Shown in pieces: positions 1 to 30,677 of a DNA stretch of 64,000 nt; the stretch's first letter is position 1, and each line of letters starts with the position of its first letter. The notes under the pieces were generated by a model. It was not told the DNA's origin. It saw nothing but the letters and a program-made list of their open reading frames with translations, and ran no database searches. Location: positions 62,001 through 126,000 of the IMG/VR virus record IMGVR_UViG_3300043399_000297; one strand, given 5' to 3'. A program made the position numbers and the translations under genes.

Positions 1-22
1 AGCCCCGGATACAGATTGGAAG

Positions 23-610
23 TTGCAGAATGATTGGCAAGTATACGAAGCTAGTCCATATGAATATACTATAAAACTAGAAGCTGATATGTATATTCCT
101 AGATCAATCGATTATTGGTGGGATATATTAAAGGATAGAGATTTAGTAGTATCAACCACTATTAGAAATTTTAAACAAGAGATTTCAGATATCAAAGCAT
201 ATCGCAGATTTATTATTGATAATAATTTGCCGGATACATATAATGCAATTACATATTTTCGTAAAAGCGAATTAGCAGAAAAATTCTTTAAGATTGTTAG
301 AGATGTGTTTGAGAATTGGGATGTATATAGAAGTTCTCTCAAATGCAATACAAATGAATTATGCACTACAGACTGGGCTTACGCTATTGCTAGTCATATA
401 TTAGGAGTTGAGAATACTACATTGCCTCCGTTTAAAGAAATGTCTATGGTTCATATGAAGCAGTTTATTAATAGTCTTCCAACTGAGAATTGGACAGATA
501 TATTCATTCACGAAATATTACCGCACACGTTTAGAATCAATACAATTGCACAGATGTATCCGGTTCATTACCATATCAAGAGTTTTGCTAAGGAAGCATT
601 AAATGGATGA
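23..610 (+). CDS. Glycosyltransferase-like protein (GT-A/GT8-like), 5'-truncated by the window edge
   Basis: Frame is open from the window start; SPYEYTIKLEADM resembles the DxD strand of GT8-like phage proteins. Confidence 0.5.
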   Translation: MQNDWQVYEASPYEYTIKLEADMYIPRSIDYWWDILKDRDLVVSTTIRNFKQEISDIKAYRRFIIDNNLPDTYNAITYFRKSELAEKFFKIVRDVFENWDVYRSSLKCNTNELCTTDWAYAIASHILGVENTTLPPFKEMSMVHMKQFINSLPTENWTDIFIHEILPHTFRINTIAQMYPVHYHIKSFAKEALNG

Positions 611-932
611 TCAAGAAGATTATGTAATCATTTGGGAACCGCCTGTTCTTGAAAAACCAGAGTTTCGTTTATACTATGACGACAGAGGTAATGTAATTAC
701 ATATACTTGCGAGAAGCTTGATGGCAATTATATCATCATTGATGCACTGACGTTTGCAGAAGCCAGACCCGACGTAAAAGTGGTAGATAATAAGTTAGTA
801 AAGATCGGTACCGGTTCTGTCATATCTCGTTTATTTTCATCCGACGAAGGTATTATGTGTGAAAAAGAAGACATAAGTATTGTTACTAATTCAGACGGAT
901 GCTTTTATAAACTAAGAGTAGTTAAAGTTTAA
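603..932 (+). CDS. Hypothetical protein
   Basis: 109-aa ORF overlapping the upstream stop, with AAGGA upstream. Confidence 0.6.
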   Translation: MDDQEDYVIIWEPPVLEKPEFRLYYDDRGNVITYTCEKLDGNYIIIDALTFAEARPDVKVVDNKLVKIGTGSVISRLFSSDEGIMCEKEDISIVTNSDGCFYKLRVVKV

Positions 933-1656
933 ACCCGCCGCTTATCTCAATTATTTGTGCGGTAATGTGTTTTCCTGCATTAGAGCAGAGTAGACTTGCC
1001 ATCTCCGCTATTTCTTCGGGTTTTCCCAATCTATTAAGCGCAGTAATACTTAACACTTCACTCAACATAGCCGGATCATTTGTTACGTATTCTGTTGTCT
1101 CACCGATAGTAAATCCTGGGCTTATTGAATTTACTGTTATCCCTCTGCTACCCAAGTCTGCTGCCATTACTCTAGTAAACGCATTCAATGCATTTTTGGC
1201 CATCGTATATACTATGATGTTTGGATCTGTTATTCTTGCGCCAGCAGATGAAATATTAATTACTCTACCTCCATCATTTATATTGTGATAAAAAGCGCGA
1301 GTCAAGAAGAACGCACTCTTGACATTATTGTTCATAATTTCATCGAAGAATTGTTCATCGGCTTTCAATATGTTACCATAATCACTGCCGCCTATATTGT
1401 TAACAAGTATGTCAATGTTATTGACTTTGTTTAATACAAGTGATGCTAGTTCCTCGGCATCTTTTTGTCCGGTTAATTTAATTTTAATTGCATCAGCTTG
1501 CCCGCCGTTTTTTATAATTTCTTCAACAGTATTCTTTGCAGCAACATCATTGTTAGCATAATTAATGATTACATTTATGCCCTGTTCAGCAAGTTTTAGT
1601 GCAATACTTTTTCCTATTCCGCGGCTTCCGCCGGTAATTAGTGCAGTTTTTGTCAT
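922..1656 (-). CDS. Short-chain dehydrogenase/reductase (FabG-like SDR)
   Basis: TGGSRGIG, NNIG (NNAG-like), NISS and YTMAK catalytic YxxxK motifs. Confidence 0.9.
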   Translation of the reverse strand: MTKTALITGGSRGIGKSIALKLAEQGINVIINYANNDVAAKNTVEEIIKNGGQADAIKIKLTGQKDAEELASLVLNKVNNIDILVNNIGGSDYGNILKADEQFFDEIMNNNVKSAFFLTRAFYHNINDGGRVINISSAGARITDPNIIVYTMAKNALNAFTRVMAADLGSRGITVNSISPGFTIGETTEYVTNDPAMLSEVLSITALNRLGKPEEIAEMASLLCSNAGKHITAQIIEISGGFKL

Positions 1657-1661
1657 AGAGA

Positions 1662-1697
1662 TATTTATTATTTACTATGTCAGAAGTAAAGTAAATA
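1662..1697. promoter_or_regulatory. Divergent pair of T4-like late promoter cores (TAAATA)
   Basis: TAAATA on - (1667-1662) and on + (1692-1697), each 5 nt before an ATG. Confidence 0.6.
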
Positions 1698-1702
1698 ATG
1701 CA

Positions 1703-2647
1703 ATGGACGACATTATTGATATTGCAGACTTAGACGTAATATACCTAAGCTATGACGAACCTCAAAAAGAAGAATTCTGGCTCAAGATTAAGAATATGGT
1801 GCCTTGGGCTGTCAGAGTAGATGGTGTTAAGGGAAGTGACGCTGCACATAAAGCAGCAGGGGAAGCATCATCTACTGAGAGATTCATTCTCATTGACGGT
1901 GACAACTTGCCCGATGAGAACTTCTTTAATTTACAATTAGACTTTACCGATAAAGACCCTAACTACAAGTTAGCGCAGTATCGTTGGAGAGCAGTCAATG
2001 CTATCAACGGGCTACGTTATGGCAACGGCGGTATGTCGTCCTGGACAAAAACTTATGTTGCCAATATGAAGACCCACGAAAGTAGTGACGGTAGTGATGC
2101 CACGACGGTTGACTTTTGTATGGATTCTTCAGATAATCTATACTGGGCAATGCACGATTGCTACTCTACTACGTATCCAAACTACACTCCCTTCCAAGCG
2201 TGGAGAGCAGGATTCCGTGAAGGTGTCAAGATGGTGCTTGATCGGGGTGCAAGGCCCAGTATAGACGATTTCAAAGAGAGAGTTGCTGGCCGCAATTTAG
2301 ATAATCTTAAAGTTTGGTTTAATGTCGGCGCAGACGCAGAGAACGGCTACTGGGCCATATATGGCGCAAGGCTCGGAACGTATATGACTATGCTTACTGA
2401 CTGGGACTATTTAGAAGTAGCGGACTTTGATACATTTGTTAAATTGTGGGAAGACCATAGATATAATTATCCTGAACAAGAAATTGAACGTCTTGGCAGA
2501 GAATTAGATAATAAATTAGGTCTCCCCGTCTGCTTACTCAGCCCGGAACAATCAAAGTTCTTCAAGCATTTTTACAACGCTGACAAACACAATCAAGGAC
2601 CATTGGTCAAGGAGATGGATGTGATTCGCCGCCTAGAGGGATGGTGA
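1703..2647 (+). CDS. GT-A-fold glycosyltransferase-like protein
   Basis: DVIYLSYDE, RVDGVKGSDAAHKAA, LIDGD (DxD) and WRAGFREGVK; start moved to the ATG at 1703 after TAAATA. Confidence 0.6.
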   Translation: MDDIIDIADLDVIYLSYDEPQKEEFWLKIKNMVPWAVRVDGVKGSDAAHKAAGEASSTERFILIDGDNLPDENFFNLQLDFTDKDPNYKLAQYRWRAVNAINGLRYGNGGMSSWTKTYVANMKTHESSDGSDATTVDFCMDSSDNLYWAMHDCYSTTYPNYTPFQAWRAGFREGVKMVLDRGARPSIDDFKERVAGRNLDNLKVWFNVGADAENGYWAIYGARLGTYMTMLTDWDYLEVADFDTFVKLWEDHRYNYPEQEIERLGRELDNKLGLPVCLLSPEQSKFFKHFYNADKHNQGPLVKEMDVIRRLEGW

Positions 2648-2648
2648 G

Positions 2649-3224
2649 TTACTTAAACTTACATTTATCGCCATGGTTCTTGGTATAGTTACTTGCCCCT
2701 TTACCTTCTTTCCCGCAATGTTCACACTTCCATTTGCGTTGAGAAGGATGTGTTCCAGCTTCAAGGGTTCTGCGATTCATTTCTCTTTGAATATTGCCAC
2801 CTAAGAACGGGTGCGTTCCGTTCTTAGCTCTTTCTCTTTGTAATTCTCCGCCTAGAAAATTATGAGTACCGTTCTTAACCCGCTCCTCGTTTATAGCCCG
2901 ACTGACTTCTCCGCCTAAGAAATGATGGGTCCCTGCGTTAACTAATTTTTTCTGAGTGTTTCTAGAAAGCATTGACAACTCATCAGGGGATAGCTGCATA
3001 TTATGAATAGCTATCTTGTAGCAGGCACCGTAGTCACCTTGAGCATAATGAATATTATAGTGTTCTTGAACAGAAAGAGCAACTAAATTAGATGGATGAT
3101 TGTTCTTGCGATTTCCATCAATATGATGCACTTCATAGGTGCGGCCGTCTGAATCTTTTGGAATAAACCCATAATGAGCTTCATAGATTTTTCGGTACTT
3201 AGTTGTACCGCAGTAAATACACAT
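2649..3224 (-). CDS. Free-standing HNH homing endonuclease
   Basis: YEVHHIDGNRKNNHPSNLVALSVQEH, repeated GTHxFLGG units and C-terminal CEHC; likely start MCIYCG at 3224. Confidence 0.85.
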   Translation of the reverse strand: MCIYCGTTKYRKIYEAHYGFIPKDSDGRTYEVHHIDGNRKNNHPSNLVALSVQEHYNIHYAQGDYGACYKIAIHNMQLSPDELSMLSRNTQKKLVNAGTHHFLGGEVSRAINEERVKNGTHNFLGGELQRERAKNGTHPFLGGNIQREMNRRTLEAGTHPSQRKWKCEHCGKEGKGASNYTKNHGDKCKFK

Positions 3225-3293
3225 AGCTGATAGTCCTTTCACGACTGTTAGAGTAGTTGGGAATCCCCATTCCGCGAACTACAACTTTATTTA
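3225..3293 (-). promoter_or_regulatory. Late promoter and structured 5' leader of the HNH gene
   Basis: Minus strand reads TAAATA..GTAGTT-cgc-GGAAT-gggg-ATTCC-c-AACTAC..AGTC-gtgaaag-GACT-atcagct-ATG; the second hairpin overlaps the AAGGA RBS. Confidence 0.55.
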
Positions 3294-3310
3294 TCTTAAA
3301 AGAGCAAAAA

Positions 3311-4723
3311 TTGTCAGAATCAGAAACCGACAGAATAAAAAGAATTCGTGACTACATTGATGTAGATGCTACGCCTACATTCTGTTTGGCCAAGTGGCAT
3401 CACGTTACGATGTATCTACAGTCAGGTGAAACACATAGTTGTTATCACCCTCAGCCGCATAAGATTCCACTAGAAGAACTGAAGGATAATCCCTCAGCAT
3501 TACATAATACAATGCATAAGAAATTAGAGCGCCAGCAAATGCTTAATGGTGAGAAACCGGTAGGTTGTCAATATTGCTGGAATATAGAAAGTATGGGACC
3601 GGACTATATAAGTGATAGACACATTAGAAATAGTTCCATATTTACGGAGGAACGTTATGTTCATACATCTAAAGGTCCATGGGATCAAAATATTAATCCT
3701 GAGTATTTGGAAATTAATTTCGGTAATGAGTGTAATTTTAAGTGCGGGTATTGTCATCCAAAATACTCTACTCGATTTTATAAAGAGATTGAAGACTTCG
3801 GGCCGGTAACAACCGTAAAGAACCATCGCTGTGATATTGACTGGATGAAACTATACCAGCGCGAAGAAGAAAATCCATATGTTGATGCATTCTGGAAGTG
3901 GTGGCCTGAACTACGCAAGACATTGAACATTATGCGTATTACTGGAGGTGAACCTACATTACACAAATCAACTTGGCAGATTCTTGACAGTATCGACGAG
4001 GACCCAATGCCATGGTTAGAACTTAATATTAATAGTAATTTTGGTACTAAGCATATATTGTTTGAAAGATTAAGTGAAAAAGTAAACAAACTAGTTAGCG
4101 AAAAGAAAATTAGAAATTTCAAGATGTTCACATCAATGGACACTTGGGGACCTAGAGCAGAATATATTCGCACTGGGTTAGACTTAACCGTTTGGGAAAA
4201 GAACTTTCACACTTATATGTCAAAGACAGGCTGTCCGGTCACATTTATGATCACATTTAATATTTTCAGTGTGACAAGCTTTAAGAGTTTACTTGAGAAG
4301 TTTTTAGAGTGGCGAAAGTTATATGGCTGGTATGATATTGAACAGTTATCCTACCCTATGCATAGAGTAAGATTTGATACGCCATATCTTCGTGACCCGA
4401 TTCAATATGATATGAACATTCTTCCAAAGGAAGAATTTATGCCCTATATGTATGACTCATTAAAGTTCATAGAAGACAACCTAGATGACACACGCCCGGA
4501 TGCGTTCACTACAATTGAATATGAAAAGTTCAAGAGAGTGGTTGACTATATGGCAGAAACAGTGTATAATGATGAGAAGTTGATTGAAGGTCGTAGAGAC
4601 TTTTATAATTGGTTTAATGAGCTAGATGATCGTCGTGAAAACGATATGTTATCTGTGTTCCCTGAAATGATGGATTTTTATAGATTATGTCAGCAAGCAA
4701 ATTTGACAAACCCTTTCTCTTAA
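3311..4723 (+). CDS. Radical SAM protein with N-terminal twitch/SPASM-like Cys domain
   Basis: CNFKCGYC, TGGEPT and N-terminal CLAKWHH..SCYH..CQYCW; probable TTG start at 3311. Confidence 0.85.
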   Translation: MSESETDRIKRIRDYIDVDATPTFCLAKWHHVTMYLQSGETHSCYHPQPHKIPLEELKDNPSALHNTMHKKLERQQMLNGEKPVGCQYCWNIESMGPDYISDRHIRNSSIFTEERYVHTSKGPWDQNINPEYLEINFGNECNFKCGYCHPKYSTRFYKEIEDFGPVTTVKNHRCDIDWMKLYQREEENPYVDAFWKWWPELRKTLNIMRITGGEPTLHKSTWQILDSIDEDPMPWLELNINSNFGTKHILFERLSEKVNKLVSEKKIRNFKMFTSMDTWGPRAEYIRTGLDLTVWEKNFHTYMSKTGCPVTFMITFNIFSVTSFKSLLEKFLEWRKLYGWYDIEQLSYPMHRVRFDTPYLRDPIQYDMNILPKEEFMPYMYDSLKFIEDNLDDTRPDAFTTIEYEKFKRVVDYMAETVYNDEKLIEGRRDFYNWFNELDDRRENDMLSVFPEMMDFYRLCQQANLTNPFS

Positions 4724-5931
4724 ACCAAAGTAAAACATTTTGTATGTTCCCGTGGTTGCATCTTAACGCTACACCTAAAGGAGATGTCTACCCTTGCTGC
4801 TCAAATAATTATTCAGAACCGTTCGGAAGTACTAAAGAGAATACTCTAGAGGAAATTTTTAACAGTCCAAAGATGAAGGAATTACGTTTGGATATGCTAA
4901 ACGAGCGTAAAAATAATATTTGTGACTTTTGTTATAAGCACGAAGAAGCAGGACCTCATAGTTTTAGAAGCTATAGTAAAACACATTTCAGTAAATATTT
5001 TGATGAAGTTGTTCCTACCACATTAGAGGACGGAACCGTCCCTGATTTCAAGATGCGGTATTTTGATATTCGCTTTAGTAATATTTGCAATTTTAAATGT
5101 CGTACTTGCGGTAGTGAATTCAGTAGTCAGTGGGCTACTGATATGCAAAAGCACTTTGATCCCTCACATCCAATTGTGATTCACGTTGATGATAATACAG
5201 GGAACGTTCTTGATGAGGTGTTAGAACACATTGATTATATTGATTTGGCATATTTCGCCGGCGGCGAACCCCTCATCACTGACGAGCATTATACAATGCT
5301 TGAAGCGATGATACGCAAGGGACGAACAGATATCACACTTAGGTATAATACTAATGCTAGTAATATCAAATATAAGAAACACGATATTCTAGAATTGTGG
5401 AAACACTTTAATAAGATAGAATTGAGTTGCAGCATTGACCATTATGGATCTAGGGCAGAATATATAAGAAAGGGAACCGATTGGGGTAAGGTAGAAAGTA
5501 ACCTTTTAACTTTTAGAGAACTAGACTACATTGATTTTCAAATTAATACAGTATTATCTATTTTTAACGTATTAACGTTAGATGATTTCTACACATATCT
5601 TTATTCAAAGGATATTATTAGAAAGCACGACTGGTACCATAGTTTATATCTAGCTGTTCATCCCAATTATTATTGTGCTAAAAGTTTACCCAAAGAACTT
5701 AAACTAATTGCTACCCAAAAACTTAACAGTTGGTATAATAATCATAAAGACGATGAAACTTGTGTTCCTAGATTAATGACTGAGGGTAATTCTTTTATGA
5801 ATGAAAGCCACAACTGGAGTCAATATAAAAATAAATTTTTTATGCATACTAACAGCATAGACAATATAAGAGGCGAAAGTTTGTGGGAAGTATTTCCCGA
5901 GTTAAGTAAATTACAAGATTTAGAGGAATAG
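4687..5931 (+). CDS. Twitch-domain radical SAM protein
   Basis: CMFPWLH..PCC..CDFC, CNFKCRTC, AGGEP. Confidence 0.88.
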   Translation: MSASKFDKPFLLNQSKTFCMFPWLHLNATPKGDVYPCCSNNYSEPFGSTKENTLEEIFNSPKMKELRLDMLNERKNNICDFCYKHEEAGPHSFRSYSKTHFSKYFDEVVPTTLEDGTVPDFKMRYFDIRFSNICNFKCRTCGSEFSSQWATDMQKHFDPSHPIVIHVDDNTGNVLDEVLEHIDYIDLAYFAGGEPLITDEHYTMLEAMIRKGRTDITLRYNTNASNIKYKKHDILELWKHFNKIELSCSIDHYGSRAEYIRKGTDWGKVESNLLTFRELDYIDFQINTVLSIFNVLTLDDFYTYLYSKDIIRKHDWYHSLYLAVHPNYYCAKSLPKELKLIATQKLNSWYNNHKDDETCVPRLMTEGNSFMNESHNWSQYKNKFFMHTNSIDNIRGESLWEVFPELSKLQDLEE

Positions 5932-5934
5932 ATA

Positions 5935-7212
5935 ATGCCTAATAGAGAGCAAGTAGAAAATCTAGTAAAGAACGGTAAGCATTTCTGTGTATTACCCTGG
6001 GTACATTTTCACGCCTGGCCTGACTCAAGAGTGATGCCTTGTTGTGTTGCTGATAGTGAATTGCCTGTTGCTAAGATTGAAGACGACCAATCAATTATTG
6101 ATTTAATGAACAGCGATAGGTATAAGGAAATACGCGCTGCTATGCTAAACGACGAACCGGTCAATGAGTGTAAGCGTTGTTTTGATATTGAGTTGATGGG
6201 CACCTGGACTATGAGACAGTCGCATAATACTAGACGAGGACTAGAGTATGTTGACTATATCACTAATAATACGCAAGAAGATGGGCATTTGAGTGAATTT
6301 GAGATGAAGTATATGGATATACGCTTTAGTAATCTATGTAATTTCAAGTGCCGTAGCTGCGGTCCTGCTTGCTCTTCCCAACACGCACAAGAATATATAG
6401 AAAATCAGGGCAAGGATAAGTATAAACAATATTTTAATACTGATAAAGTCATTATCAACAATAATGAAGAACAAAAGTTTATGCTCAAACTTAAGCCTTA
6501 TTTGGCCGATGTATTAGAAGTTTATTTCGCAGGTGGCGAAATTATCATTACTCCTGAGCATTATGAATGTCTTGACTATTGGATAGAGAACGGACAAGCT
6601 GATACTATTGAACTTAACTATACAACCAACTTTAGTACACTACACGGATACAAAGATAAAAATCTACTAGAATACTGGAAGAAGTTTAAGAATGTTCAAG
6701 TTTGGGCAAGTCTTGATGCTCACGGGCCTTTAGCAGAATGTATTCGCAAGGGTTCAGATTGGGAAAGAATCGAACAAAATATTAAGGATTTGAAAGCAGA
6801 AGTACCGCACGTTCAATTTCAAATTACTCCCACAATTAGTATTTGGAATATCTTTAAGTTTCCTGATTTCTTTGACTATATGGTACAAAACAACTATATT
6901 TCTACGGATTCTTGTCCTAGATTTAATCTGTTAACAAGCCCTTGGTTTGCTAATATTATGATTATGCCTAAGCACGTAAAGAATAGATTGATTGAATTAT
7001 ATAGAGTATACGCAAACAAGTATGGAAAACATAACGTAGATTTGCACAATGGATTCAAGATGATCATTTATAATCTTAGTGTGGGTGAAGAAAATAAGGG
7101 CGGCATTCAAGAATTTATGAAGTACAATGAAGAAATGGACAAGTGGAGAAAAGAAAAGTTCGAAGACCTTGTCCCAGAAATTAAGGAAGTTTATGAGTGG
7201 GCACAATCCTAA
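5935..7212 (+). CDS. Twitch-domain radical SAM protein
   Basis: CVLPWVH..PCC..CKRC, CNFKCRSC, AGGE. Confidence 0.88.
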   Translation: MPNREQVENLVKNGKHFCVLPWVHFHAWPDSRVMPCCVADSELPVAKIEDDQSIIDLMNSDRYKEIRAAMLNDEPVNECKRCFDIELMGTWTMRQSHNTRRGLEYVDYITNNTQEDGHLSEFEMKYMDIRFSNLCNFKCRSCGPACSSQHAQEYIENQGKDKYKQYFNTDKVIINNNEEQKFMLKLKPYLADVLEVYFAGGEIIITPEHYECLDYWIENGQADTIELNYTTNFSTLHGYKDKNLLEYWKKFKNVQVWASLDAHGPLAECIRKGSDWERIEQNIKDLKAEVPHVQFQITPTISIWNIFKFPDFFDYMVQNNYISTDSCPRFNLLTSPWFANIMIMPKHVKNRLIELYRVYANKYGKHNVDLHNGFKMIIYNLSVGEENKGGIQEFMKYNEEMDKWRKEKFEDLVPEIKEVYEWAQS

Positions 7213-7378
7213 TTGTAGACAGATTCTATTAGTAGAAAAGGTTCGGCAATTTGTTACTGAATACCAACATCACTACAATTTAGATCAAGTATACGGAATA
7301 GATATTGAAGCGTCATTGTTTCTTTTTGTAAAAGAATGTATTAAGGAATATAATGAAGCGAAACCTAATCGCAATTGA
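7193..7378 (+). CDS. Small hypothetical protein (61 aa)
   Basis: AAGGA RBS at about 7183 and ATG at 7193; fills the gap between two radical SAM genes and overlaps both. Confidence 0.55.
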   Translation: MSGHNPNCRQILLVEKVRQFVTEYQHHYNLDQVYGIDIEASLFLFVKECIKEYNEAKPNRN

Positions 7379-8312: not shown

Positions 8313-8320
8313 ATATTCAA

Positions 8321-11349: not shown

Positions 11350-11365
11350 AATAAAGGATTAGCTT

Positions 11366-14213: not shown

Positions 14214-14240
14214 ATAGAGCTATTATTAAAGAAGGATATT

Positions 14241-16570: not shown

Positions 16571-16590
16571 TAAGGCTGCACTATCCTTGG

Positions 16591-19439: not shown

Positions 19440-19449
19440 GATACCTTCG

Positions 19450-21165: not shown

Positions 21166-21186
21166 ATTTAATACTTAAATACTCTT

Positions 21187-22908: not shown

Positions 22909-23651
22909 AAAAGATAGGTTTGGTAGCTGGATGCAGCCATTCGGCAGGCTCAGAAATGGATGGAACAGAGGATAGTTATTATAATCGTCAAAATGCATTT
23001 GGCTCATTATTGTGCAAAAGCCTAGGGTACGAACCAATAAACATTGCATTGGGCGGCGCGGCAAATAGCGGCATCGCAAGAAGTATTTTGTTGTGGTTTG
23101 ATGAGTTTTATAAAAAAGATGAGATGGATGTGTTTGTTGTTATCGGGTGGACTGAAAGCTCAAGACTTGAAGTTCCGGCAGAATCTAGGCTTTGTTATTA
23201 CAACGAAGCTAATAGCAGTGCAGATTGGTATGACGCTTCTGCTAACTATTTTCATAGAATAAACTTTGGGTGGATGGGAGCAACCGAAGAAGAACAGATT
23301 ATGATTCCTATATATCAAAACTTTATGGCAAATAATCCTTCAATTCTAGAAAATTGGTCAGCAACTAGCGTTTTGCAAATTCAATACTTTTTAAAATCGT
23401 TGAATGTTAAGTATGTAATGAGCAATACTATGCATATGTTTCAACCAGACAATGATTTTACTAAGTTCTTGATTAGTCAAATAGATAAAACAAGATATTT
23501 TAATTTACTTACTGATCAAAATATGTCGTTCTATTGGAAGTATGCAAATCTAGGATATGAAAATAAGAAAGCTACATATTGGCATCACGATGAAGAACCT
23601 CACCGGTTGTATGCAGAAGAACTTCTTAAGTTTCTAGAAGACGTAGAATGA
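22905..23651 (+). CDS. SGNH/GDSL-like protein
   Basis: VAGCSHSAG, NIALGGAANSGI, IGWT...R, WHHDEEPH. Confidence 0.55.
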   Translation: MKKIGLVAGCSHSAGSEMDGTEDSYYNRQNAFGSLLCKSLGYEPINIALGGAANSGIARSILLWFDEFYKKDEMDVFVVIGWTESSRLEVPAESRLCYYNEANSSADWYDASANYFHRINFGWMGATEEEQIMIPIYQNFMANNPSILENWSATSVLQIQYFLKSLNVKYVMSNTMHMFQPDNDFTKFLISQIDKTRYFNLLTDQNMSFYWKYANLGYENKKATYWHHDEEPHRLYAEELLKFLEDVE

Positions 23652-24478
23652 TTTTGTACTGTAATGGAGACAGTTTTGTAGCGGGAGTCGAATTGGGGGA
23701 TGATATTTTACCTGAATATCCCGGCACACAAGACTTTGATGCTCCCACTAGTGTAATAAATCTGGCAAAAGAGTGGATATTAAAAACACAGAATCACACA
23801 CATCCGTGGGCGGCTATGCGACAAGAGCTATTCACACAAATTTTTGATATCGAACGCAGTAGAGCTTTCCCTAACAAGATTAGTAAATTACTTAATCTTC
23901 CTGTAATCAATAACGCATTAGGAGGTTCTAGTATGGATAGAATAGCAAGAACTACTATTGATAGCTTAATTGAATTAAAGAGAGAAAATGAGGATATTAT
24001 TGCTATAATAGGAATAACTGAGGCTAGTAGATCAGAACTTGCTAACTTCAATGAGTGTTACAATAACGAGTATTCAACTAGATGGGTAGATATGTCATTG
24101 GGTTATGTTAATGAAGGGGTAAAGCCACTAGAAGCAGTCAGAAACTACAAACTGCGTTATGAAACGGATTATCACTGTCAAATAAATTTCTACAAGAATG
24201 TTATTCTTTTACAAGATTTCTGTAAAGTAAATCATATTCCCTTGTTTTGGGTAAACCCGGGTTTTACTAATCTATCTAACTCGCACCCTGATACTGATTT
24301 GCTAAATATGAAGAATTATGCAAATCTTACTTGTATTGTAGATATGGTAGAGATTGCAAGAAAAATTAATGTTAACGTTAGGTGTCCATCGGGGCATCAT
24401 TCGGAAGTAGTTCACGATGAAGTGGCAAAAATAATTGCCTCGATATTACAGGAGAGCAGCTATGTTCAAATTCATTAA
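23648..24478 (+). CDS. SGNH/GDSL-like protein
   Basis: YCNGDSFVAG, NNALGGSSMDRI, SGHHSEVVH. Confidence 0.6.
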   Translation: MILYCNGDSFVAGVELGDDILPEYPGTQDFDAPTSVINLAKEWILKTQNHTHPWAAMRQELFTQIFDIERSRAFPNKISKLLNLPVINNALGGSSMDRIARTTIDSLIELKRENEDIIAIIGITEASRSELANFNECYNNEYSTRWVDMSLGYVNEGVKPLEAVRNYKLRYETDYHCQINFYKNVILLQDFCKVNHIPLFWVNPGFTNLSNSHPDTDLLNMKNYANLTCIVDMVEIARKINVNVRCPSGHHSEVVHDEVAKIIASILQESSYVQIH

Positions 24479-24566
24479 AAAAATTGTCAACAAGATTAAA
24501 CGAGAGATTACATACCGCAAGCGTGTCAAAGAACTACGCAAAAGAGATCCGTTCATTTACAAATGA
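24462..24566 (+). CDS. 34-aa basic peptide MFKFIKKIVNKIKREITYRKRVKELRKRDPFIYK (not in the ORF track)
   Basis: GGAG RBS upstream; the stop overlaps the carbamoyltransferase start (ATGA); fills the intergenic gap exactly. Confidence 0.75.
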   Translation: MFKFIKKIVNKIKREITYRKRVKELRKRDPFIYK

Positions 24567-26047
24567 GTTATCTAGGCATTAGCTGCGGCTTTCACGATGC
24601 TGCTGTCAGTGTAGTTGACAGTGTTGGCAATATCACCTTCGCCGGACATAGCGAACGTTATAGTAAGAAAAAACACGATGAAAACTTATCTGTTGATCTA
24701 GTCAAAGATGCACTAACGCATTCATATGGCTCTATGGAACTACACTATTATGAGAGACCATACATTAAGGCTATCAGGCAATGGCAAGCTGGACAAGATA
24801 TCGGGCCATTGAACGTTAAAGATATAATTGGCTCAGATGTATTAGATACTCTAAAAATGTATGATAGTAAGATTCATACACACAATCATCATCTTTGTCA
24901 CGCCGCAGCCGGCTTTCAAACAAGCCCATTCAATGATGCTACTGTAGTTGTCATTGATGCGATAGGGGAATTAGATACTATTAGTATTTGGCACGCCACT
25001 TATAATAAGAAAGGTAGAGCGAAGTATAAGAAGCTTTGGGGAAAGAAATATCCTAATTCAATAGGACTAATGTATTCAGCTATGACACAGAGAGTAGGTC
25101 TTAGACCATTAGACGAAGAATACATATTGATGGGTATGGCAGCATATGGCAAACCTAAATATTTTGATTTATTAAATGATACCTTTTTGTCTAATCCTGC
25201 GTATATTGATTTTAGGCAGAACTTGCATACAGGAGTAGATCAAAGTTTCTTGTCCGGTGCAGATGATATGGATATTGCTAGTTCTGCGCAAGCGTTGGCA
25301 GAAGTATTGATTCGAATTGTATTGTTAAAGGCGATGCATCTGGGAAGAAGTAGTAACCTAGTATATAGCGGAGGAGTAGCACTCAACTGTGCAGCCAATA
25401 GATATCTAGGAAGCTATTTCAAAAATATGTGGATTATGCCTAACCCAGGTGATGCAGGCAATAGTCTTGGTGCAGCAGCATTAGGGTACGGTAAGAAATT
25501 AAATTGGACTAATGCATTCTTGGGTTATGAAATCAAAGGCGATTATCCGGTTGACAATCTCATAAAAGAGTTGCATAGTAATAAGATCGTAGGAGTAGCT
25601 AGTGGTAGAGCAGAGTTCGGTCCAAGAGCATTGGGTAATCGTAGTCTGTTAGCAGACCCACGCGGCCCTAATATTAAGGATAAGGTTAATGAGATTAAGC
25701 GAAGACAAAAGTTCAGACCATTTGCGCCGATCGTTTTGGAGGAGTTGGTTACTGATTACTTTGATATGCCTACTGGTTGGACTGACTCTAGGTATATGCA
25801 AGTCGTCGCTATTTGTAGGCATCCTGGTTTATTTCCTGCTATCGTTCACGCTGACGGGACTAGTCGTGTTCAGACTGTTCCTAAAGATGAATCAGGAATC
25901 AGAAAGCTTTTAGAAGTTTGGTACGAACAGACCGGCTGCCCTATGCTTCTTAATACATCACTGAATATTCGCGGTGAACCCATGGTCAACGATAGAAATG
26001 ATGCTGACCGCTTTGAAAAACTCTATGGAGTAAAAGTATATTCATAA
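24563..26047 (+). CDS. O-carbamoyltransferase (NodU/CmcH/TobZ family)
   Basis: HDAA, ERYS, HHLCHA, MGMAAYG, GGVALN, PGDAG, EFGPRALGNRS, FRPFAP, NTSLN. Confidence 0.93.
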   Translation: MSYLGISCGFHDAAVSVVDSVGNITFAGHSERYSKKKHDENLSVDLVKDALTHSYGSMELHYYERPYIKAIRQWQAGQDIGPLNVKDIIGSDVLDTLKMYDSKIHTHNHHLCHAAAGFQTSPFNDATVVVIDAIGELDTISIWHATYNKKGRAKYKKLWGKKYPNSIGLMYSAMTQRVGLRPLDEEYILMGMAAYGKPKYFDLLNDTFLSNPAYIDFRQNLHTGVDQSFLSGADDMDIASSAQALAEVLIRIVLLKAMHLGRSSNLVYSGGVALNCAANRYLGSYFKNMWIMPNPGDAGNSLGAAALGYGKKLNWTNAFLGYEIKGDYPVDNLIKELHSNKIVGVASGRAEFGPRALGNRSLLADPRGPNIKDKVNEIKRRQKFRPFAPIVLEELVTDYFDMPTGWTDSRYMQVVAICRHPGLFPAIVHADGTSRVQTVPKDESGIRKLLEVWYEQTGCPMLLNTSLNIRGEPMVNDRNDADRFEKLYGVKVYS

Positions 26048-26056
26048 GTAGTTATT

Positions 26057-29000
26057 ATGCTACGTGATGTATTTTACTATGGACAGAAACCAAACGTTCA
26101 TCCGAGAGAACAGTTTGCTAAAGATTTAGAAGATGCTAGGAATAAAGCGACTACTCGTGACTTTTGGATAATCAACGAATTCTGCGATTATCGTAATTTT
26201 AATTGGGATTTCGATTTTGAGTTTCTCCCAGATGAAGATGTATGGGCAGAAGATCATAACAATGTATGGCCTAGCCAACATCAAAAAGATTCAGGAACCT
26301 GGTTATGCCCCAAACAGCATAGTGACTTAATTATATATCGGTGTGATGTTGATCCTATCTGGCGCAAGAACGAAAAGCAAAGTGTTAATTGGGTTGAATT
26401 AGATTTAATTGACCATACTAAGTTTGACTTTAGTTGGCATCCTGATCCTACTGATCCTCCTTATATCTATAAGTGGGGATGCAAATATTATCCTGCTCAA
26501 ATCAAGCACGTATTAGAATATCGTGTTCCGGGCTCAACTCAAGAAAAATTTATGGATATTTCTGCGGAACTTTTGCCTGACTGGGATAAATGGGTAATAC
26601 CTGACAGTATAAATAAATCCGGGTTTGATTTTTCTTGGAGACCCAGTCCTCTTGACCCGCCGCTTATATATGAATTTGGAACGCAATGGCAAAAGGATGG
26701 TGGACCGATTTATGTTGCTAGTGGAGCAACTAAAAGGAAGTATATCAATGATCAAAAAGCTACGAGGATTGCTTCAAACGAAAATTGGACGATTCCTGAC
26801 AATATTGATATTGCTGGATTTGATTTATCATGGCATCCAGATAATATTAGTCCTCCTTATATCTATGTATTTGCTACTCAGTGGGCACTCAGTGGCGGAC
26901 CTGTTTACACAGTTCCTGGCGCAACTGAAATCAAATATGTAGACGCTCAGGTAGCTACTGCACTCCCCGATAAAACAAATTGGATATACAACGAAGAAGA
27001 AATTGACGTTTCTAGTTTTGACTTCAGTTGGCATCCCTTTTCAGGGGACGACCCTTTCATCTATCAGTTTGGTACTCAATGGCAAAAGACTGGAGGTCCG
27101 AAATATATTACTCCGGGCGCGGATGAATCAAGCCCGATCAAGTATGTTGATACTCGTATTATCAAAGCTACTCACCTGCCTGACAAAAACAAGTTCATTG
27201 TATTGGGAAACAATGCTGTTCAGGAGTTTGATTATAGTTGGCATCCAGATGATACAGAAGATCCATATATCTATGTGTTTGGCAATCAATGGCATACAGC
27301 AGAAGTTATGCCAACCATTGAATACAGGATGACTGGCGCAACCCAATACAAGTATATAAATGATACTATTGCTATTCTTGGTCCTAATATGACACATTGG
27401 TTTTACGACTCAAACGAGATAGATGTTTCTGATTTTGATTTTAGTTGGTGTCCTAATCCCGGAGAACCTGAATTAATTTATGAGTTTGCTACTCAGTGGC
27501 AAAAGACTGGTGGTCCTAGATATATTGTGCCGGGTGCTACTGACGTAAAGTATTTAGACTTTCAAAAAGCAAGAGCATTGCCTTCTGAAAAAAATTGGAC
27601 AGTTCCTAGCAATATTGATGCAACGTTGTTTGACTTCAGTTGGCATCCTGATGCGACTAGCCCTCCTTATATCTATGTATTTGCTACTCAGTGGGCACTC
27701 AGTGGCGGACCTATATATACTGTACCGAACGCAACCGAATACAAATATGTCGATGAACAGATAGCTACTGCATTACCTGATATGACCAATTGGGTATATG
27801 ACGAAACAAAGATTGATGTTGAAAGTTTTGACTTCAGTTGGCATCCATATGTTGAAGATCAGCCATATATCTATCAGTTCGGTACACAATGGTGGCCAAC
27901 TGGTGGACCAAAATATATTGCACCGGGGGCAACAAGCGCAAGCCCAGTAAAATACATTGATACACGTATCATTAAAGCTAATACAATACCGGGTCTTGAA
28001 AATTGGGAAATTCCGGACGAGGTAGATAAAAGTAAGTTTGATTTTACTTGGATCCCTCATCCAGAAGACCCTCCCTATATATATGTGTTCGGCAATCAGT
28101 GGTTTAGTGCAGAAAAAATGCCCACTGTAAGATATATTGTTGAAGGTGCAACTGAAATTAAGTATGTTCGCGATATCATTGCTACAATAAAACCAAACAA
28201 AGACAATTGGACAATAGCTAATAATATAGTAGTGAAAGAGTTTGATTTTAGTTGGATACCAGATCCTCATTCTCCTCCTTATATCTATGTGTTCGGTAAT
28301 CAATGGTATTCAGCAGAAGAAATGTCAACTGTAGAATATCACACTCTTGGTGCTACTGAAAGAAAATATATTAATGATATTAGGGTTGTGTTAGACAAAA
28401 ACTTTACGAATTGGGAAATACCAAAAGGAATCGATGTTTCGCGATTTGATTTTAGTTGGATCCCTCATCCTAAAGCACCTCCATATATCTACCAGTTCGG
28501 CACCTTAAAGGATCCGTTGGATGGACCTAGATATATTACTCCAGGCAACAATGGAGAAATAGTTCGTGTACCAAGAATAGAACTTGATGAAATTGAATTT
28601 ATGCCTATCAATAGATATTATATTGAAACTACGTTGGATGACTTGATTATTAAACATCCAGATGAAATGTTCTGGGCGCTGAATAAAGAAATAGATTATT
28701 CTACATTTAACTTTGACTGGACCCCTTCATTGGACCAAGCAGATTATATTCAGGTATTCGGTCAAAGCTCAAGTATAAAAACTCAAACTTATTTGATCAA
28801 TTCTACATTGTGGACTAAAGGGTTGCGAGAGTTTAATTATGTAGAAGAACAAGAGAAAAAGACTGTTTCTGATTTGGATATCTTTTTTGTGGACAAAGGA
28901 AACTCAGAAGCTAATGAAAGATTCCATATACTAAAAAACAAGTTCGGCTCAAAGATTCAAAAGACACGATATCTCAACAGTTGGGTAGACACAATTAATC

Positions 29001-30604
29001 GCTGTATTAATCGTGCTACAAGTAATCTAATTTGGATTCTTAACAGCGAATTAGATTATTCTAACTTTGACTTTACTTATTACCCTAACCCTTGGCAGAT
29101 GAAGATGGTTCACGTATTTGGAACACAACATAGTCATTGGGGAACAACTTTTATGGTCAATCGCGAAACGTTTCCCGAAGATACAAAGTATATTAAAATC
29201 ATTGAACATTTGTCAAATCTAAACTTTGTCAAGGACATTAGAGCCAAAGCAACTGAATGTGTATATGATATTGTCATTATAGACCACAATAATATAGAAA
29301 GCTTATCAGTTACAGAAACGATGAAAAGAGTTTGGGCTCCTAATAGGAATGTTACTACTATAAAATATGAGGATAGTTATCTAAACACAATTCGTAACTA
29401 TGTAAAGAAGTTACCTGACAAAAAAGAACATTATCTTTGGATTTGCTCAAGCGTATGCGACTATACTAACTTTGACTTTAGTTATATATGTGATCCCTTT
29501 GCTAAAGATAATCTACACGTATTTCCCAGCAATAATCAAAAGTTTGGGGACACGTTCTTGTTGGATGTAAACAAGACTAAAGAAATCATAGATGATCTAG
29601 AAAAACTTGAAGATTATAATAAGGTGAGCTATAACAGTGCTACGAAGGCGAATAGATTGTTGCCACCAATCATCGTCACAGAAAATGATACGCATACCAA
29701 TTCATTAGAAACTATTACAGGATTTCCTTATGCAAGACTGATTACTAAGGACAACTTGAATGTTGAAGTTCCTGAGATTGAACCTATGAATCTATGGTCA
29801 CCTGAAACTAAGAACATTCAGGTACTAAGCACCGGTGCAACTCATATTGTAGCTCCTATAGAAATTAAAGATTATGTCAAGAAAGAACTATACGAATATC
29901 CATATATTAAACGCGCTCCAAAGTTAGCATTGTCTAATCCTATTGATATCGTGTTCTTGAGCAACGGTGAAATTGGTGCAGAAGAAAACTATGAACATCT
30001 ATTGAATATCACTAAGAACTTGAAGAACCGTGTAGTGAGAGTAGATGGGGTGAACGGTCGTGTTGCAGCATATCATAAAGCAGCAGAAGCTAGCGAAACG
30101 CCGTGGTTCTTCACGGTGTTTGCTAAGTTGAAGGTTAGTCCCAAATTTGATTTTAACTGGCAACCTGACAGAATGCAAATCCCCAAGCACTACATCTTCC
30201 ACGCAAAGAATCCTGTCAATGGGTTGACATATGGTCACCAGGCAATGATTGCATACAACAAAAAGCTTACTCTTGCTAATGAGGGATATGGACTAGACTT
30301 TACATTAGATGACGAACACGAGGTTGTGCCACTTATCTCTGGTACCGCACATTATAATACAGATGAATTTTCTACTTGGAGAACAGCATTTAGAGAGGTA
30401 ATCAAGCTTAAAGCAGACATTAGTGATATAGCCAAAGATAGACTTGATGTATGGTTGAATAAAGCAGAAGGTGACTTTGCTCAATATAGCATTAAGGGTG
30501 CATTGGATGCTGATGAATATTATGATGAAGTCAATGGCGAGTTTGACAAACTCAAGCTAAGCTATGAATGGGATTGGCTACGCAAAAAGTTTGGGGAAAT
30601 GTGA
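26057..30604 (+). CDS. 1515-aa protein with tandem FDFSWxP/PYIY repeats and degenerate GT-A-like domains
   Basis: 11 internal repeats of about 65 aa; C-terminal domain homologous to ORF 1703 (DIVFLS, RVDGVNG, WRTAFREVIK). Confidence 0.75.
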   Translation: MLRDVFYYGQKPNVHPREQFAKDLEDARNKATTRDFWIINEFCDYRNFNWDFDFEFLPDEDVWAEDHNNVWPSQHQKDSGTWLCPKQHSDLIIYRCDVDPIWRKNEKQSVNWVELDLIDHTKFDFSWHPDPTDPPYIYKWGCKYYPAQIKHVLEYRVPGSTQEKFMDISAELLPDWDKWVIPDSINKSGFDFSWRPSPLDPPLIYEFGTQWQKDGGPIYVASGATKRKYINDQKATRIASNENWTIPDNIDIAGFDLSWHPDNISPPYIYVFATQWALSGGPVYTVPGATEIKYVDAQVATALPDKTNWIYNEEEIDVSSFDFSWHPFSGDDPFIYQFGTQWQKTGGPKYITPGADESSPIKYVDTRIIKATHLPDKNKFIVLGNNAVQEFDYSWHPDDTEDPYIYVFGNQWHTAEVMPTIEYRMTGATQYKYINDTIAILGPNMTHWFYDSNEIDVSDFDFSWCPNPGEPELIYEFATQWQKTGGPRYIVPGATDVKYLDFQKARALPSEKNWTVPSNIDATLFDFSWHPDATSPPYIYVFATQWALSGGPIYTVPNATEYKYVDEQIATALPDMTNWVYDETKIDVESFDFSWHPYVEDQPYIYQFGTQWWPTGGPKYIAPGATSASPVKYIDTRIIKANTIPGLENWEIPDEVDKSKFDFTWIPHPEDPPYIYVFGNQWFSAEKMPTVRYIVEGATEIKYVRDIIATIKPNKDNWTIANNIVVKEFDFSWIPDPHSPPYIYVFGNQWYSAEEMSTVEYHTLGATERKYINDIRVVLDKNFTNWEIPKGIDVSRFDFSWIPHPKAPPYIYQFGTLKDPLDGPRYITPGNNGEIVRVPRIELDEIEFMPINRYYIETTLDDLIIKHPDEMFWALNKEIDYSTFNFDWTPSLDQADYIQVFGQSSSIKTQTYLINSTLWTKGLREFNYVEEQEKKTVSDLDIFFVDKGNSEANERFHILKNKFGSKIQKTRYLNSWVDTINRCINRATSNLIWILNSELDYSNFDFTYYPNPWQMKMVHVFGTQHSHWGTTFMVNRETFPEDTKYIKIIEHLSNLNFVKDIRAKATECVYDIVIIDHNNIESLSVTETMKRVWAPNRNVTTIKYEDSYLNTIRNYVKKLPDKKEHYLWICSSVCDYTNFDFSYICDPFAKDNLHVFPSNNQKFGDTFLLDVNKTKEIIDDLEKLEDYNKVSYNSATKANRLLPPIIVTENDTHTNSLETITGFPYARLITKDNLNVEVPEIEPMNLWSPETKNIQVLSTGATHIVAPIEIKDYVKKELYEYPYIKRAPKLALSNPIDIVFLSNGEIGAEENYEHLLNITKNLKNRVVRVDGVNGRVAAYHKAAEASETPWFFTVFAKLKVSPKFDFNWQPDRMQIPKHYIFHAKNPVNGLTYGHQAMIAYNKKLTLANEGYGLDFTLDDEHEVVPLISGTAHYNTDEFSTWRTAFREVIKLKADISDIAKDRLDVWLNKAEGDFAQYSIKGALDADEYYDEVNGEFDKLKLSYEWDWLRKKFGEM
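26385..28560 (+). repeat. Coding tandem repeat array (11 units of about 200 bp) with an 810-bp higher-order duplication
   Basis: Unit is NW...ID...FDFSWxP...PYIYxFGxQW...Y..PGAT..KY; 51 bp are identical at 26852-26902 and 27662-27712. Confidence 0.85.
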
Positions 30605-30642: not shown

Positions 30643-30677
30643 AGAACATAGTTCAATTTATCTTGAAGGATATTAAA

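Follow-up and report, generated by a model that had tools for sequence, protein, structure and literature searches.

Large variable regions next to tail-fibre genes have been described in aquatic T4-type phages as the host recognition cluster or hypervariable island of pelagimyophages and cyanomyophages (Zaragoza-Solas et al. 2020, PMC7029224). These regions are rich in glycosyltransferases, GT8 being the commonest, in UDP-glucose 6-dehydrogenase and in radical SAM cassettes that come and go between relatives, and were proposed, by inference, to change the host surface so as to exclude other phages. Virion glycosylation by virus-encoded transferases is represented by chlorovirus PBCV-1 A64R and the mycobacteriophage Che8 type (Freeman et al. 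2023, as cited in PMC12619734), in which cytoplasmic GT-A transferases with no lipid carrier glycosylate capsid or tail proteins; those systems use 1-6 transferases and little tailoring. Amidino, carbamoyl and radical SAM chemistry is found among the aminoglycoside/aminocyclitol tailoring enzymes (StrB1, TobZ, NovN, BtrN and GenK).

Here, a window of 64,000 nucleotides (positions 62,001 to 126,000 of IMG/VR record IMGVR_UViG_3300043399_000297) was analysed. Window positions 1-30604 form a co-oriented block in a 244-kb contig of an uncultivated jumbo phage related to PA5oct, Atu_ph07, GAP32 and RsoM2USA. Like the pelagimyophage islands, the block lies next to fibre genes, varies in content among relatives and holds GT, UGDH-like and radical SAM genes; the amidinotransferase, carbamoyltransferase, B12 radical SAM enzymes, mini DegT, F1 and F2 families and giant repeat protein described below are not mentioned in that study. 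Relative to the virion glycosylation systems, at least 9 transferase domains are accompanied by radical SAM, amidino and carbamoyl chemistry, and homology is at fold level only (about 15% identity). Relative to the aminoglycoside enzymes, the amidinotransferase family aligns full-length to StrB1, the carbamoyltransferase to NovN and TobZ, and the twitch domain to that of BtrN, but the twitch domain is N-terminal rather than C-terminal and the context is a phage structural region.

Gene content of the island

A sequence-only reading had described at least 22 co-oriented, mostly translationally coupled genes in this block, with an aminoglycoside-style sugar-tailoring inventory under late promoters. 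The observation held: about 22 plus-strand genes fill 23-30604, most starts overlapping or lying within about 20 nt of the previous stop, interrupted by two minus-strand genes. The gene at 1703 starts there and not at the first ATG of its ORF (1565), and the island continues left of base 1. The features are as follows.

23..610 (+), C-terminal 195 aa of a 249-aa GT8-like putative glycosyltransferase whose gene starts 139 nt left of the window (5175-5924 of locus L002)
603..932 (+), conserved 109-aa protein with no Pfam or PHROG hit
922..1656 (-), FabG-like short-chain dehydrogenase (SDR), an antisense insertion
1692..1697 (+), TAAATA motif 11 nt before the 1703 start (others at 8310, 14211 and 21176; TAAGTA at 26045)
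1703..2647 (+), F1 family, GT-A-like putative glycosyltransferase with a DGD motif
2649..3242 (-), HNH homing-endonuclease-like insertion
3257..4723 (+), radical SAM enzyme with an N-terminal twitch domain, paralog 1, ortholog of RsoM2USA gene 349
4687..5931 (+), radical SAM enzyme with an N-terminal twitch domain, paralog 2
5935..7212 (+), radical SAM enzyme with an N-terminal twitch domain, paralog 3
7353..8312 (+), radical SAM enzyme with a C-terminal five-Cys auxiliary-cluster-like region
8321..10243 (+), B12-binding radical SAM enzyme (class B, probable methyltransferase)
10240..11349 (+), F2 family GT-B glycosyltransferase
11366..13447 (+), two tandem F2 GT-B domains
13428..14213 (+), SGNH-like protein (motif level)
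14241..15425 (+), putative NDP-sugar 6-dehydrogenase
15422..16570 (+), F2 family GT-B glycosyltransferase (the modelled member)
16591..18855 (+), B12-binding radical SAM enzyme, 754 aa
18855..19439 (+), mini DegT-like aminotransferase, 194 aa
19450..20190 (+), possible GT-A-like protein with a DGD motif, an insertion specific to this phage
20191..21165 (+), StrB1-like amidinotransferase
21187..22908 (+), cupin-like N-terminal domain (motif level) fused to an F2 GT-B domain
22905..23651 (+), SGNH-like protein (motif level)
23648..24478 (+), SGNH-like paralog with a classical GDS motif (motif level)
24563..26047 (+), O-carbamoyltransferase (NodU/CmcH/TobZ type)
26057..30604 (+), 1515-aa protein with 11 tandem 65-70-aa FDFSW repeats and a C-terminal F1-like domain (residues 1296-1482) without DxD

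Six radical SAM enzymes were confirmed. Pfam Radical_SAM hit all six; three of these hits (3257, 5935 and one marginal) fell below the gathering score but were rescued by NF033640 (N_Twi_rSAM), for which 3257, 4687 and 5935 scored 306, 377 and 357 bits against a cut-off of 170. The CxxxCxxC motif was present in 3257 (CNFKCGYC), 4687, 5935 and 7353, and the N-terminal domain of 4687 aligned to the BtrN twitch domain. Gene 7353 (Radical_SAM E 8e-8) scored only 27 bits on NF033640 and is not a member, but C259, C278, C301, C306 and C308 were invariant across 18 homologs. Genes 8321 and 16591 had B12-binding and Radical_SAM domains above Pfam thresholds. Neither reached a specific KedN5/GenK-type C-methyltransferase family: 8321 matched KedN5 partially (240 bits, cut-off 700), and the best hit of 16591, a RiPP C-methyltransferase subfamily, scored 104 bits against 282.

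The radical SAM enzymes have no demonstrated link to sugars and are tied to them only by position. N-twitch arrays occur in Vibrio phage K566 without any of these transferases, a homolog in Paenibacillus sits beside ketosynthases, and related families also modify peptides. One alternative, which appears unlikely, is that the six enzymes methylate, epimerise or cross-link a phage protein, for example the FDFSW-repeat protein or the 109-aa product of 603, while the transferases add only simple sugars. The best hit of 16591 is consistent with this, twitch/SPASM enzymes commonly act on peptides, and the minimal core in RsoM2USA pairs one N-twitch enzyme with F1 and F1b. However, the NCBIfam scores bearing on this reading are all far below family cut-offs, no leader-peptide-like gene or RiPP recognition element was seen, and BtrN and viperin, the nearest solved relatives, act on a cyclitol and a nucleotide.

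The 20191 family profile matched StrB1 (1bwd) at E 1.3e-83 over positions 4-320, followed by AGAT, HsvA and SxtG; the Cys of GGCFHC aligned with that of StrB1, and His and Asp residues were invariant in the family. Gene 24563 matched Carbam_trans_N and Carbam_trans_C (E 2e-35 and 2e-48; 123 and 165 bits, cut-offs 24 and 27), its best solved relatives being NovN (E 4e-43), GdmN and TobZ, although it did not reach the NodU equivalog (125 against 1000). The DegT protein passed the Pfam threshold (46.8 bits against 19.8) and retained the SFQxxK and DAA motifs, with D83, A85, S102 and K107 invariant across 22 homologs, but all 22 are of the same 194-aa length, against about 360 aa for the family, and lack the small domain. 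For 14241, the N-terminal and central UDPG_MGDP_dh domains passed (E 1e-16) and GxGxxG (GVGKLG) and GGACHPRD motifs were present, but the C-terminal domain scored 18.8 against 30 and TIGR03026 154 against 190.

Five domains belong to a new GT-B family, F2: 10240, 11366 (two), 15422 and the C-terminus of 21187. The 10240 family aligned to the 15422 family with 100% hhalign probability (HMM E 1e-147), hits of the F2 family HMMs A2 and A3 fell in each half of 11366, where motifs were also seen by eye, and the F2 HMM covered residues 293-572 of 21187 (E 1e-28). The AF2 model of 15422 (pLDDT 89.3) returned GT-B glycosyltransferases as nearly all of the top 50 Foldseek PDB hits (best E 4e-4); GT10 membership is only a lead (Atlas score 0.79), and structural neighbours of F2 are fused to NDP-sugar epimerase domains. 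T4 beta-glucosyltransferase was among the fold hits, and phage transferases can hypermodify DNA (cited in PMC12619734). Decoration of modified bases of the phage genome nevertheless seems improbable: no base-modifying starter enzyme was found in the window, a DHFR and a full-length match to the Pfam thymidylate synthase family (which does not distinguish ThyA from hydroxymethylase relatives) are present, the upstream motif is late-type, and the neighbours are fibres rather than replication genes.

The F1 family occurs in 1703 and in the C-terminus of 26057 (BLASTP to 1703, E 1e-13). The AF2 model of 1703 (pLDDT 85.7) gave the PBCV-1 capsid glycosyltransferase A64R (2p6w) as top Foldseek PDB hit (E 4e-4), nearly all listed hits had the GT-A-type nucleotide-sugar fold, and the Che8 transferase was among the viral fold hits; these matches are weak, however (TM 0.2-0.4, E 1e-3 to 1e-4). 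F1 is fused to GT1/GT28 domains in other proteins. For gene 23, every top PDB hit of the family profile (A10) was glycogenin, again weakly (E 0.005-0.05), in an alignment spanning the LDAD motif. Gene 19450 had only a weak DUF6492 hit (E 0.003) and no homolog in related loci.

The three SGNH-like proteins and the cupin rest on motifs and sub-threshold hits only. Invariant residues were G15-C16-S17, N49 and D200-x-H202 in 13428, weakly linked to the 22905 family by hhalign (E 0.001), and G9, S11, G15 and H233 in 22905, which had a sub-threshold DUF6071 hit (E 7e-4) and no PDB hit. The GDS motif of 23648 was found by inspection; its family HMM score (E 2e-59) is partly circular, since this ORF is one of the 24 rows from which the HMM was built. 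In the N-terminus of 21187 the PxHxDH and PHAASN motifs were invariant, without a database hit.

The inventory of the sequence-only reading was thus essentially right, but "aminoglycoside-style" is an analogy of enzyme classes and not membership. The classes resemble StrB1, TobZ/NovN, BtrN, GenK and StsC, yet no cyclitol synthase, kinase, phosphatase, exporter or self-resistance gene was found among the ORFs scanned. A soluble aminoglycoside-like or guanidino-sugar inhibitor made by the phage is therefore considered very unlikely, nine or more transferases being far more than such pathways use, and the giant repeat protein and fibre context also arguing against it.

Distribution and genomic neighbourhood

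Co-occurrence of the genes across relatives, a condition set beforehand, was borne out: more than 150 viral contigs carry the island, with conserved arms and a variable middle. The GT8-like gene is syntenic in 66 loci, the 603 product was found in 48 related loci (median identity 51%), F1 in 76 (median 71%) and 16591 in 30+ (63-84%). All three genes of the amidino cassette (18855, 20191 and 21187) are present in 34 loci and none in 16. The carbamoyltransferase immediately precedes the giant gene in almost all relatives. In contrast, the short-chain dehydrogenase (adh_short_C2 E 7e-54) was absent from the first 79 related loci, with a later single 30% match in locus L131, and the HNH gene (HNH_3 E 1e-11) was seen in only one relative, L019. 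The N-twitch query matched only four records in the phage collection searched: RsoM2USA, Vibrio phages K566/K567 and one marine single-cell virus.

The island starts left of the window, directly after Ser/Thr/Asn-rich tail-fibre-like genes, one product having an IMC/Peptidase_G2 C-terminus, which are syntenic in 43-51 relatives. Consistent with this adjacency, a minimal core lies beside the tail module of the cultured Ralstonia phage RsoM2USA (MG752970, genes 348-355), in the same order of fibre-like, GT8, GT8, small protein, F1, N-twitch radical SAM and F1b genes at 23-39% identity (36% for 3257). All of these genes are annotated hypothetical. They lie next to ORF356, ORF359 and ORF361, which were matched by mass spectrometry to protein bands from purified virions (PMC8504454). 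This core spans only about 7 kb and has no B12 radical SAM enzyme, amidino cassette, carbamoyltransferase, F2 transferase or FDFSW repeats.

No island protein has a predicted membrane segment, and no initiating phosphoglycosyltransferase, flippase, polymerase or ABC exporter of an Und-P-dependent O-antigen or capsule locus was found. The sequence-only reading had left open decoration of either virion proteins or the host envelope; the former gains support from the tail-fibre-like neighbours and from the position of the minimal core beside the RsoM2USA tail module, and the latter is disfavoured by the lack of membrane segments. Soluble transferases could still act on the host's lipid-linked O-antigen or capsule units, with export by host flippases, and many O-antigen transferases are soluble or peripheral; the GT8, UGDH and radical SAM cassettes of fibre-adjacent islands were read in this way (PMC7029224). 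This alternative is regarded as unlikely, given also that exclusion is of little use shortly before lysis if the late-type motif is taken at face value, and that the core is linked to fibre and tail genes even in a distant cultured phage.

Proposed glycan assembly

The interpretation of the sequence-only reading was partly supported. The explanation we favour, at roughly even confidence, is that the block is the variable glycan island of a T4-superfamily jumbo phage, probably switched on late, which assembles and tailors an oligosaccharide in the cytoplasm on a phage-made protein, most likely the fibre-like proteins encoded just upstream or the giant FDFSW-repeat protein. The enzyme identities (within the limits given above for each), the conserved arms and variable middle, the adjacency to fibre genes, the lack of membrane segments and the shared upstream motif were established by the analysis, whereas the glycan, its acceptor, its transcription and each step below are inferred, and every link to the virion is by gene neighbourhood.

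In this model, host NDP-sugars would be the feedstock and the 14241 dehydrogenase would make a uronic acid. The amidino cassette would make an amino sugar (mini DegT) and convert the amine to a guanidine with arginine as donor (amidinotransferase), the GT-B half of 21187 would transfer it, and the cupin half may isomerise or oxidise the sugar. The GT8-like, F1 and F2 transferases would build the chain, the carbamoyltransferase would add an O-carbamoyl group, the two B12 enzymes would C-methylate, the four twitch-type radical SAM enzymes would carry out further radical chemistry such as epimerisation, oxidation or dehydration, and the SGNH-like proteins would add or remove O-acyl groups. The variable middle would give each relative a different glycan, as expected for a surface structure under selection.

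The claim of an undescribed system was overstated, since glycosyltransferase- and radical-SAM-rich hypervariable islands next to tail fibres were described in pelagimyophages (PMC7029224); these are the closest published kind. A more far-reaching possibility, held only tentatively, is that a whole clade of environmental jumbo phages makes a protein-linked glycan carrying guanidino, carbamoyl and radical-SAM-installed groups, with the giant protein as a length-variable, self-decorating glycan carrier on the virion; this would be a viral glycoprotein coat with chemistry so far known only from antibiotic pathways. Relatives of the giant protein are 841-3089 aa long with 5-35 repeat motifs. As it lacks DxD, it may not be an enzyme; a possible second, degenerate F1-like module (about residues 940-1040) was seen by eye only.

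Upstream motif and right boundary

TAAATA or TAAGTA cores were present at all five sites named in the sequence-only reading (genes 1703, 8321, 14241, 21187 and 26057). TAAATA was the most enriched hexamer 6-20 nt before starts, 9 of 36 occurrences falling in about 1.4% of the sequence. The same motif and spacing occur at the terminase (48054) and a virion-like gene (49620), whereas SSB and UvsX have Shine-Dalgarno-type leaders. "Late promoter" remains an inference, as the motif sits only 4-6 nt before ATG and could instead be a start-site or translation signal. The full T4-type late octamer TATAAATA occurs only three times on the plus strand, two of them upstream of genes and none in the island. 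Before the giant gene, CATAAGTA or TAAATA lies about 12 nt upstream in 38 of 42 relatives. Right after the island, a sigma70-like promoter starts.

Gene content and predicted enzymes of the island

The window covers bases about 62001-126000 of a 244-kb JGI metagenome contig (3300043399 Ga0451681_0000007), which is that of a phage. The large terminase at 48054 was 50% identical to those of the jumbo phages PA5oct, Phosso and Atu_ph07, and a gp32-like SSB, UvsX, a helicase and virion proteins lie downstream, whereas no phage in the GenBank collection matched at the nucleotide level. The sequence-only reading had described a 30-kb island of at least 22 co-oriented, mostly coupled genes, and this observation was confirmed: ORF listing and inspection of stops and starts gave about 22 co-oriented genes from 23 to 30604, most of them overlapping or nearly abutting. 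The genes, named by their start coordinates, and the two minus-strand genes that interrupt them are as follows.

23: end of a GT8-like protein
922-1656, minus strand: FabG-like SDR
1703: F1 family, GT-A-like
2649-3242, minus strand: HNH endonuclease
3257, 4687 and 5935: radical SAM enzymes with an N-terminal twitch domain
7353: fourth radical SAM enzyme, with C-terminal cysteines
8321 and 16591: B12-binding radical SAM enzymes
10240 and 15422: F2 family, GT-B-like
11366: two F2 domains
13428, 22905 and 23648: SGNH-like proteins, at motif level
14241: predicted NDP-sugar 6-dehydrogenase
18855: 194-aa DegT relative
19450: insertion absent from relatives
20191: amidinotransferase
21187: cupin-like half, at motif level, and C-terminal F2 half
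24563: O-carbamoyltransferase
26057: 1515-aa repeat protein

The antisense HNH endonuclease and SDR are absent from nearly all relatives and so look like recent insertions. A small ORF at 7127-7378, between the third twitch radical SAM gene and 7353, coincides with a 61-aa gene called by JGI.

Three radical SAM enzymes (3257, 4687 and 5935) passed NCBIfam NF033640, the family with a twitch domain at the N-terminus, at 306-377 bits against a cut-off of 170. A profile of this family aligned its N-terminal domain to the twitch domain of BtrN and its core to viperin. Gene 7353 encodes a fourth radical SAM enzyme with five invariant C-terminal cysteines. Genes 8321 and 16591 have B12-binding plus radical SAM domains, but neither reached the cut-off of any specific methyltransferase family. 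Read-through or recoding was considered because the only two TAG stops of the island (5929-5931 and 20188-20190) are each followed in frame by the next gene. This was rejected, as the N-terminal Cys-rich domain is a genuine N-terminus in three paralogs and matches the twitch domain of BtrN, and 19450 is an insertion absent from relatives; there was no need to invoke either process.

The amidinotransferase was missed by Pfam. However, a profile of 21 homologs of gene 20191 matched StrB1 (1bwd) at E 1.3e-83 over its full length, with the GGxFHC cysteine aligned. Gene 24563 encodes a two-domain O-carbamoyltransferase whose nearest solved relatives are NovN, GdmN and TobZ. Gene 14241 carries the GxGxxG and GGACHPRD motifs of a predicted NDP-sugar 6-dehydrogenase. 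The DegT relative encoded by 18855 keeps the PLP-lysine and aspartate motifs and has the same short length in 22 relatives.

Genes 10240 and 15422 were identified as paralogs (hhalign probability 100%), and an AlphaFold model of 15422 (pLDDT 89.3) matched almost only GT-B glycosyltransferases. HMMs of this family (F2) found five domains: 10240, 15422, two in 11366 and the C-terminal half of 21187. The gene that starts at 1703 (F1) gave a model of pLDDT 85.7, the N-terminal half of which matched GT-A enzymes, first the PBCV-1 capsid glycosyltransferase. Elsewhere, F1 is fused to GT1/GT28 domains or to Sel1 repeats, and it is homologous to residues 1296-1482 of the 1515-aa protein (E 1e-13). Gene 23 is the end of a 249-aa GT8-like protein whose profile hit only glycogenins (E 0.005-0.05). 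The three SGNH-like proteins and the cupin half of 21187 have conserved motifs but no significant database match.

The giant protein encoded by 26057 contains 11 regular repeats of 65-70 aa with the consensus NW..ID..FDFSWHPD..PPYIYxFGTQW..GGPxY..PGAT..KY. Its C-terminus holds an F1-like domain that lacks DxD; a second, degenerate module was seen by eye only and its BLAST match was not significant. Relatives range from 841 to 3089 aa, with 5 to 35 repeat motifs.

Database searches offered little further guidance. PDB profile searches returned nothing significant for F1, F2, the 21187 family, the SGNH-like family or the repeat unit, the only lead being a weak resemblance of the repeat to a beta-propeller blade motif of soluble glucose dehydrogenase (sGDH; E 0.55). 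Searches of the ESM Atlas returned only uncharacterised viral clusters, plus a GT10 lead for F2. Of ten island proteins scanned against PHROGs, nine had no hit and gene 23 had one weak hit to a family of unknown function.

Related loci, boundaries and genomic context

Two scans of IMG/VR returned more than 150 related loci. The left arm, consisting of the GT8-like gene, a 109-aa protein, F1, three to five N-twitch radical SAM genes and 7353, is conserved at 55-85% identity. The right arm, consisting of the B12 radical SAM enzyme 16591, the SGNH-like 22905, the carbamoyltransferase and the giant protein, is also conserved, whereas the middle is variable. The mini DegT, the amidinotransferase and the cupin-GT behave as one amidino cassette, with all three present in 34 loci and none present in 16, although the related loci are not independent lineages and these co-occurrence counts therefore overstate the support. 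Minimal versions, found in the related loci L131, L140 and L147, keep only GT8, the small protein, F1, one radical SAM gene and the giant protein.

To the left, the island continues beyond the window with a second GT8-like gene, preceded by three fibre-like genes rich in Ser, Thr and Asn, one with a Peptidase_G2/IMC C-terminus typical of tail fibres and spikes; they are syntenic in 43-51 relatives. A fibre-like protein upstream of the island (317-1783 of L002, the locus record carrying the sequence left of the window) has TTAAQPNITSxGTL repeats and a weak, sub-threshold match to the chlorovirus glycoprotein repeat (E 7e-4). To the right, a sigma70-like promoter (30614-30642) begins 10 nt after the stop at 30604. 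Inside the island, scans for sigma70 promoters and terminators gave results not above those of shuffled sequence.

The cultured Ralstonia phage RsoM2USA has the same order of fibre-like, GT8, GT8, small protein, F1, N-twitch rSAM and F1b genes (genes 355-348). These lie beside ORF356, ORF359 and ORF361, which were matched by the authors of that study to protein bands from purified virions by mass spectrometry (PMC8504454). The bacterial contexts of N-twitch radical SAM homologs were uninformative, comprising a ketosynthase-SDR-GT2 neighbourhood in Paenibacillus and unrelated genes in Ancylomarina. The SDR of the window was only 26% identical to the Paenibacillus SDR, so no link was drawn between them. 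The moraphage paper (PMC12619734) appears to describe a different lineage.

The upstream TAAATA motif

TAAATA occurs 36 times on the plus strand, and 15 of these lie within 45 nt upstream of a start, a zone covering 4.3% of the sequence. It is the top hexamer at 6-20 nt before starts. The motif sits 4-6 nt before ATG at 1703, 8321 and 21187, and also at the terminase gene (48054) and a virion-like gene (49620); the copies with this close spacing begin at 1692, 8310, 21176, 31461, 42109, 48043, 49609 and 54508. The SSB and UvsX genes instead have Shine-Dalgarno-type leaders. Either CATAAGTA or TAAATA lies about 12 nt before the giant gene in 38 of 42 distinct relatives. T4 late promoters are TATAAATA, and the core here is shorter. 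The motif is so close to ATG that it implies either leaderless late mRNAs or a translation signal; if it is a -10 element, the late mRNAs would be leaderless or nearly so.

Inferred role of the island and the genes that follow it

No island protein has a predicted membrane segment. The usual lipid-carrier route to the cell surface is therefore not encoded, and a cytoplasmic acceptor is favoured. Adjacency to fibre genes conserved as far as RsoM2USA, the motif shared with structural genes, and the variable middle point to a phage protein, probably a fibre or the giant repeat protein, as that acceptor. The analysis establishes gene content, synteny and the shared motif, whereas late expression, the glycan and its acceptor are inferred from sequence and gene neighbourhood alone. 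The chemical steps are likewise inferred from enzyme class; they would be uronic acid formation, amination, amidination to a guanidine, carbamoylation, C-methylation, other radical steps and acylation. This reading is held with moderate confidence, and remodelling of the host surface, the strongest of the alternatives, is considered unlikely.

The sequence-only interpretation of an aminoglycoside-style toolkit was supported only in part: the resemblance is real at the level of single enzymes, but the defining cyclitol synthase and the export or resistance genes were not found among the ORFs scanned. A soluble natural product is the least likely of the alternatives. Tailoring of peptides rather than sugars by the radical SAM set is also unlikely, though slightly less so than the remaining alternatives other than host-surface remodelling. 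The cultured Vibrio phage K566 carries four N-terminal-twitch radical SAM paralogs in a row (13944-20713) without any F1, F2 or GT8 gene, and these enzymes therefore also work outside this island.

The closest published system is the host recognition cluster of pelagimyophages, a hypervariable, fibre-adjacent region rich in GT8 transferases, UDP-glucose dehydrogenase and radical SAM cassettes, which was read there, without experimental testing, as O-antigen modification (PMC7029224). A marine T4-like genome with 12 radical SAM genes has also been noted (PMC5332604). The amidino cassette, the carbamoyltransferase paired with a giant repeat protein, the B12 radical SAM enzymes and the F1 and F2 families were not found described in any phage in our literature searches. 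If the proposed reading is right, phages outside the mycobacteriophages glycosylate their particles, and do so with far richer chemistry than any known viral glycan. The N-terminal-twitch radical SAM enzymes, the F1 and F2 transferases, the mini DegT and the FDFSW repeat would gain a first functional context, and the variable middle would be a natural library of glycan-tailoring enzymes. One island gene alone has thousands of environmental homologs (4167 clusters; 1638 for F1), and the minimal core in RsoM2USA brings the question within reach of a cultured phage.

The region to the right of the island contains the following features.

30663-31055: small protein with a signal peptide, YDR/NYDR repeats and one membrane segment, behind the sigma70-like promoter at 30614-30642
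31055-31449, plus strand: permuted (two-piece) tmRNA of the alphaproteobacterial type, with tag ANDNDFAFELALAA
34326-34345 and 34554-34573, minus strand: two identical 20-nt hairpins (CCACTTTTTTGCCTAAGTGG), 228 nt apart, in the gap between genes 34046 and 34661
34661-37177: MoxR-type AAA ATPase and VWA/DUF2201 metallopeptidase-like pair, 62-95% identical in relatives
35775-35802: strong terminator between the two genes of this pair
35813-35841: sigma70-like promoter, also between these two genes
39052-40418: dihydrofolate reductase and full-length thymidylate synthase family gene (Pfam E 1e-105)
40415-43176 and 45338-46054: second sugar-tailoring cluster, with a methyltransferase, an NDP-sugar epimerase/dehydratase and a full-length 351-aa DegT aminotransferase; a gp9/10-like baseplate gene (43966) and another methyltransferase follow

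The tmRNA hints at an alphaproteobacterial host, and the short ORFs listed across it are probably spurious. Modification of the phage DNA is a very unlikely alternative; the thymidylate synthase family gene suggests ordinary thymidine in the DNA, although the match does not separate it from hydroxymethylase relatives. The second sugar-tailoring cluster lies outside the island and could supply it with amino-deoxy sugars.
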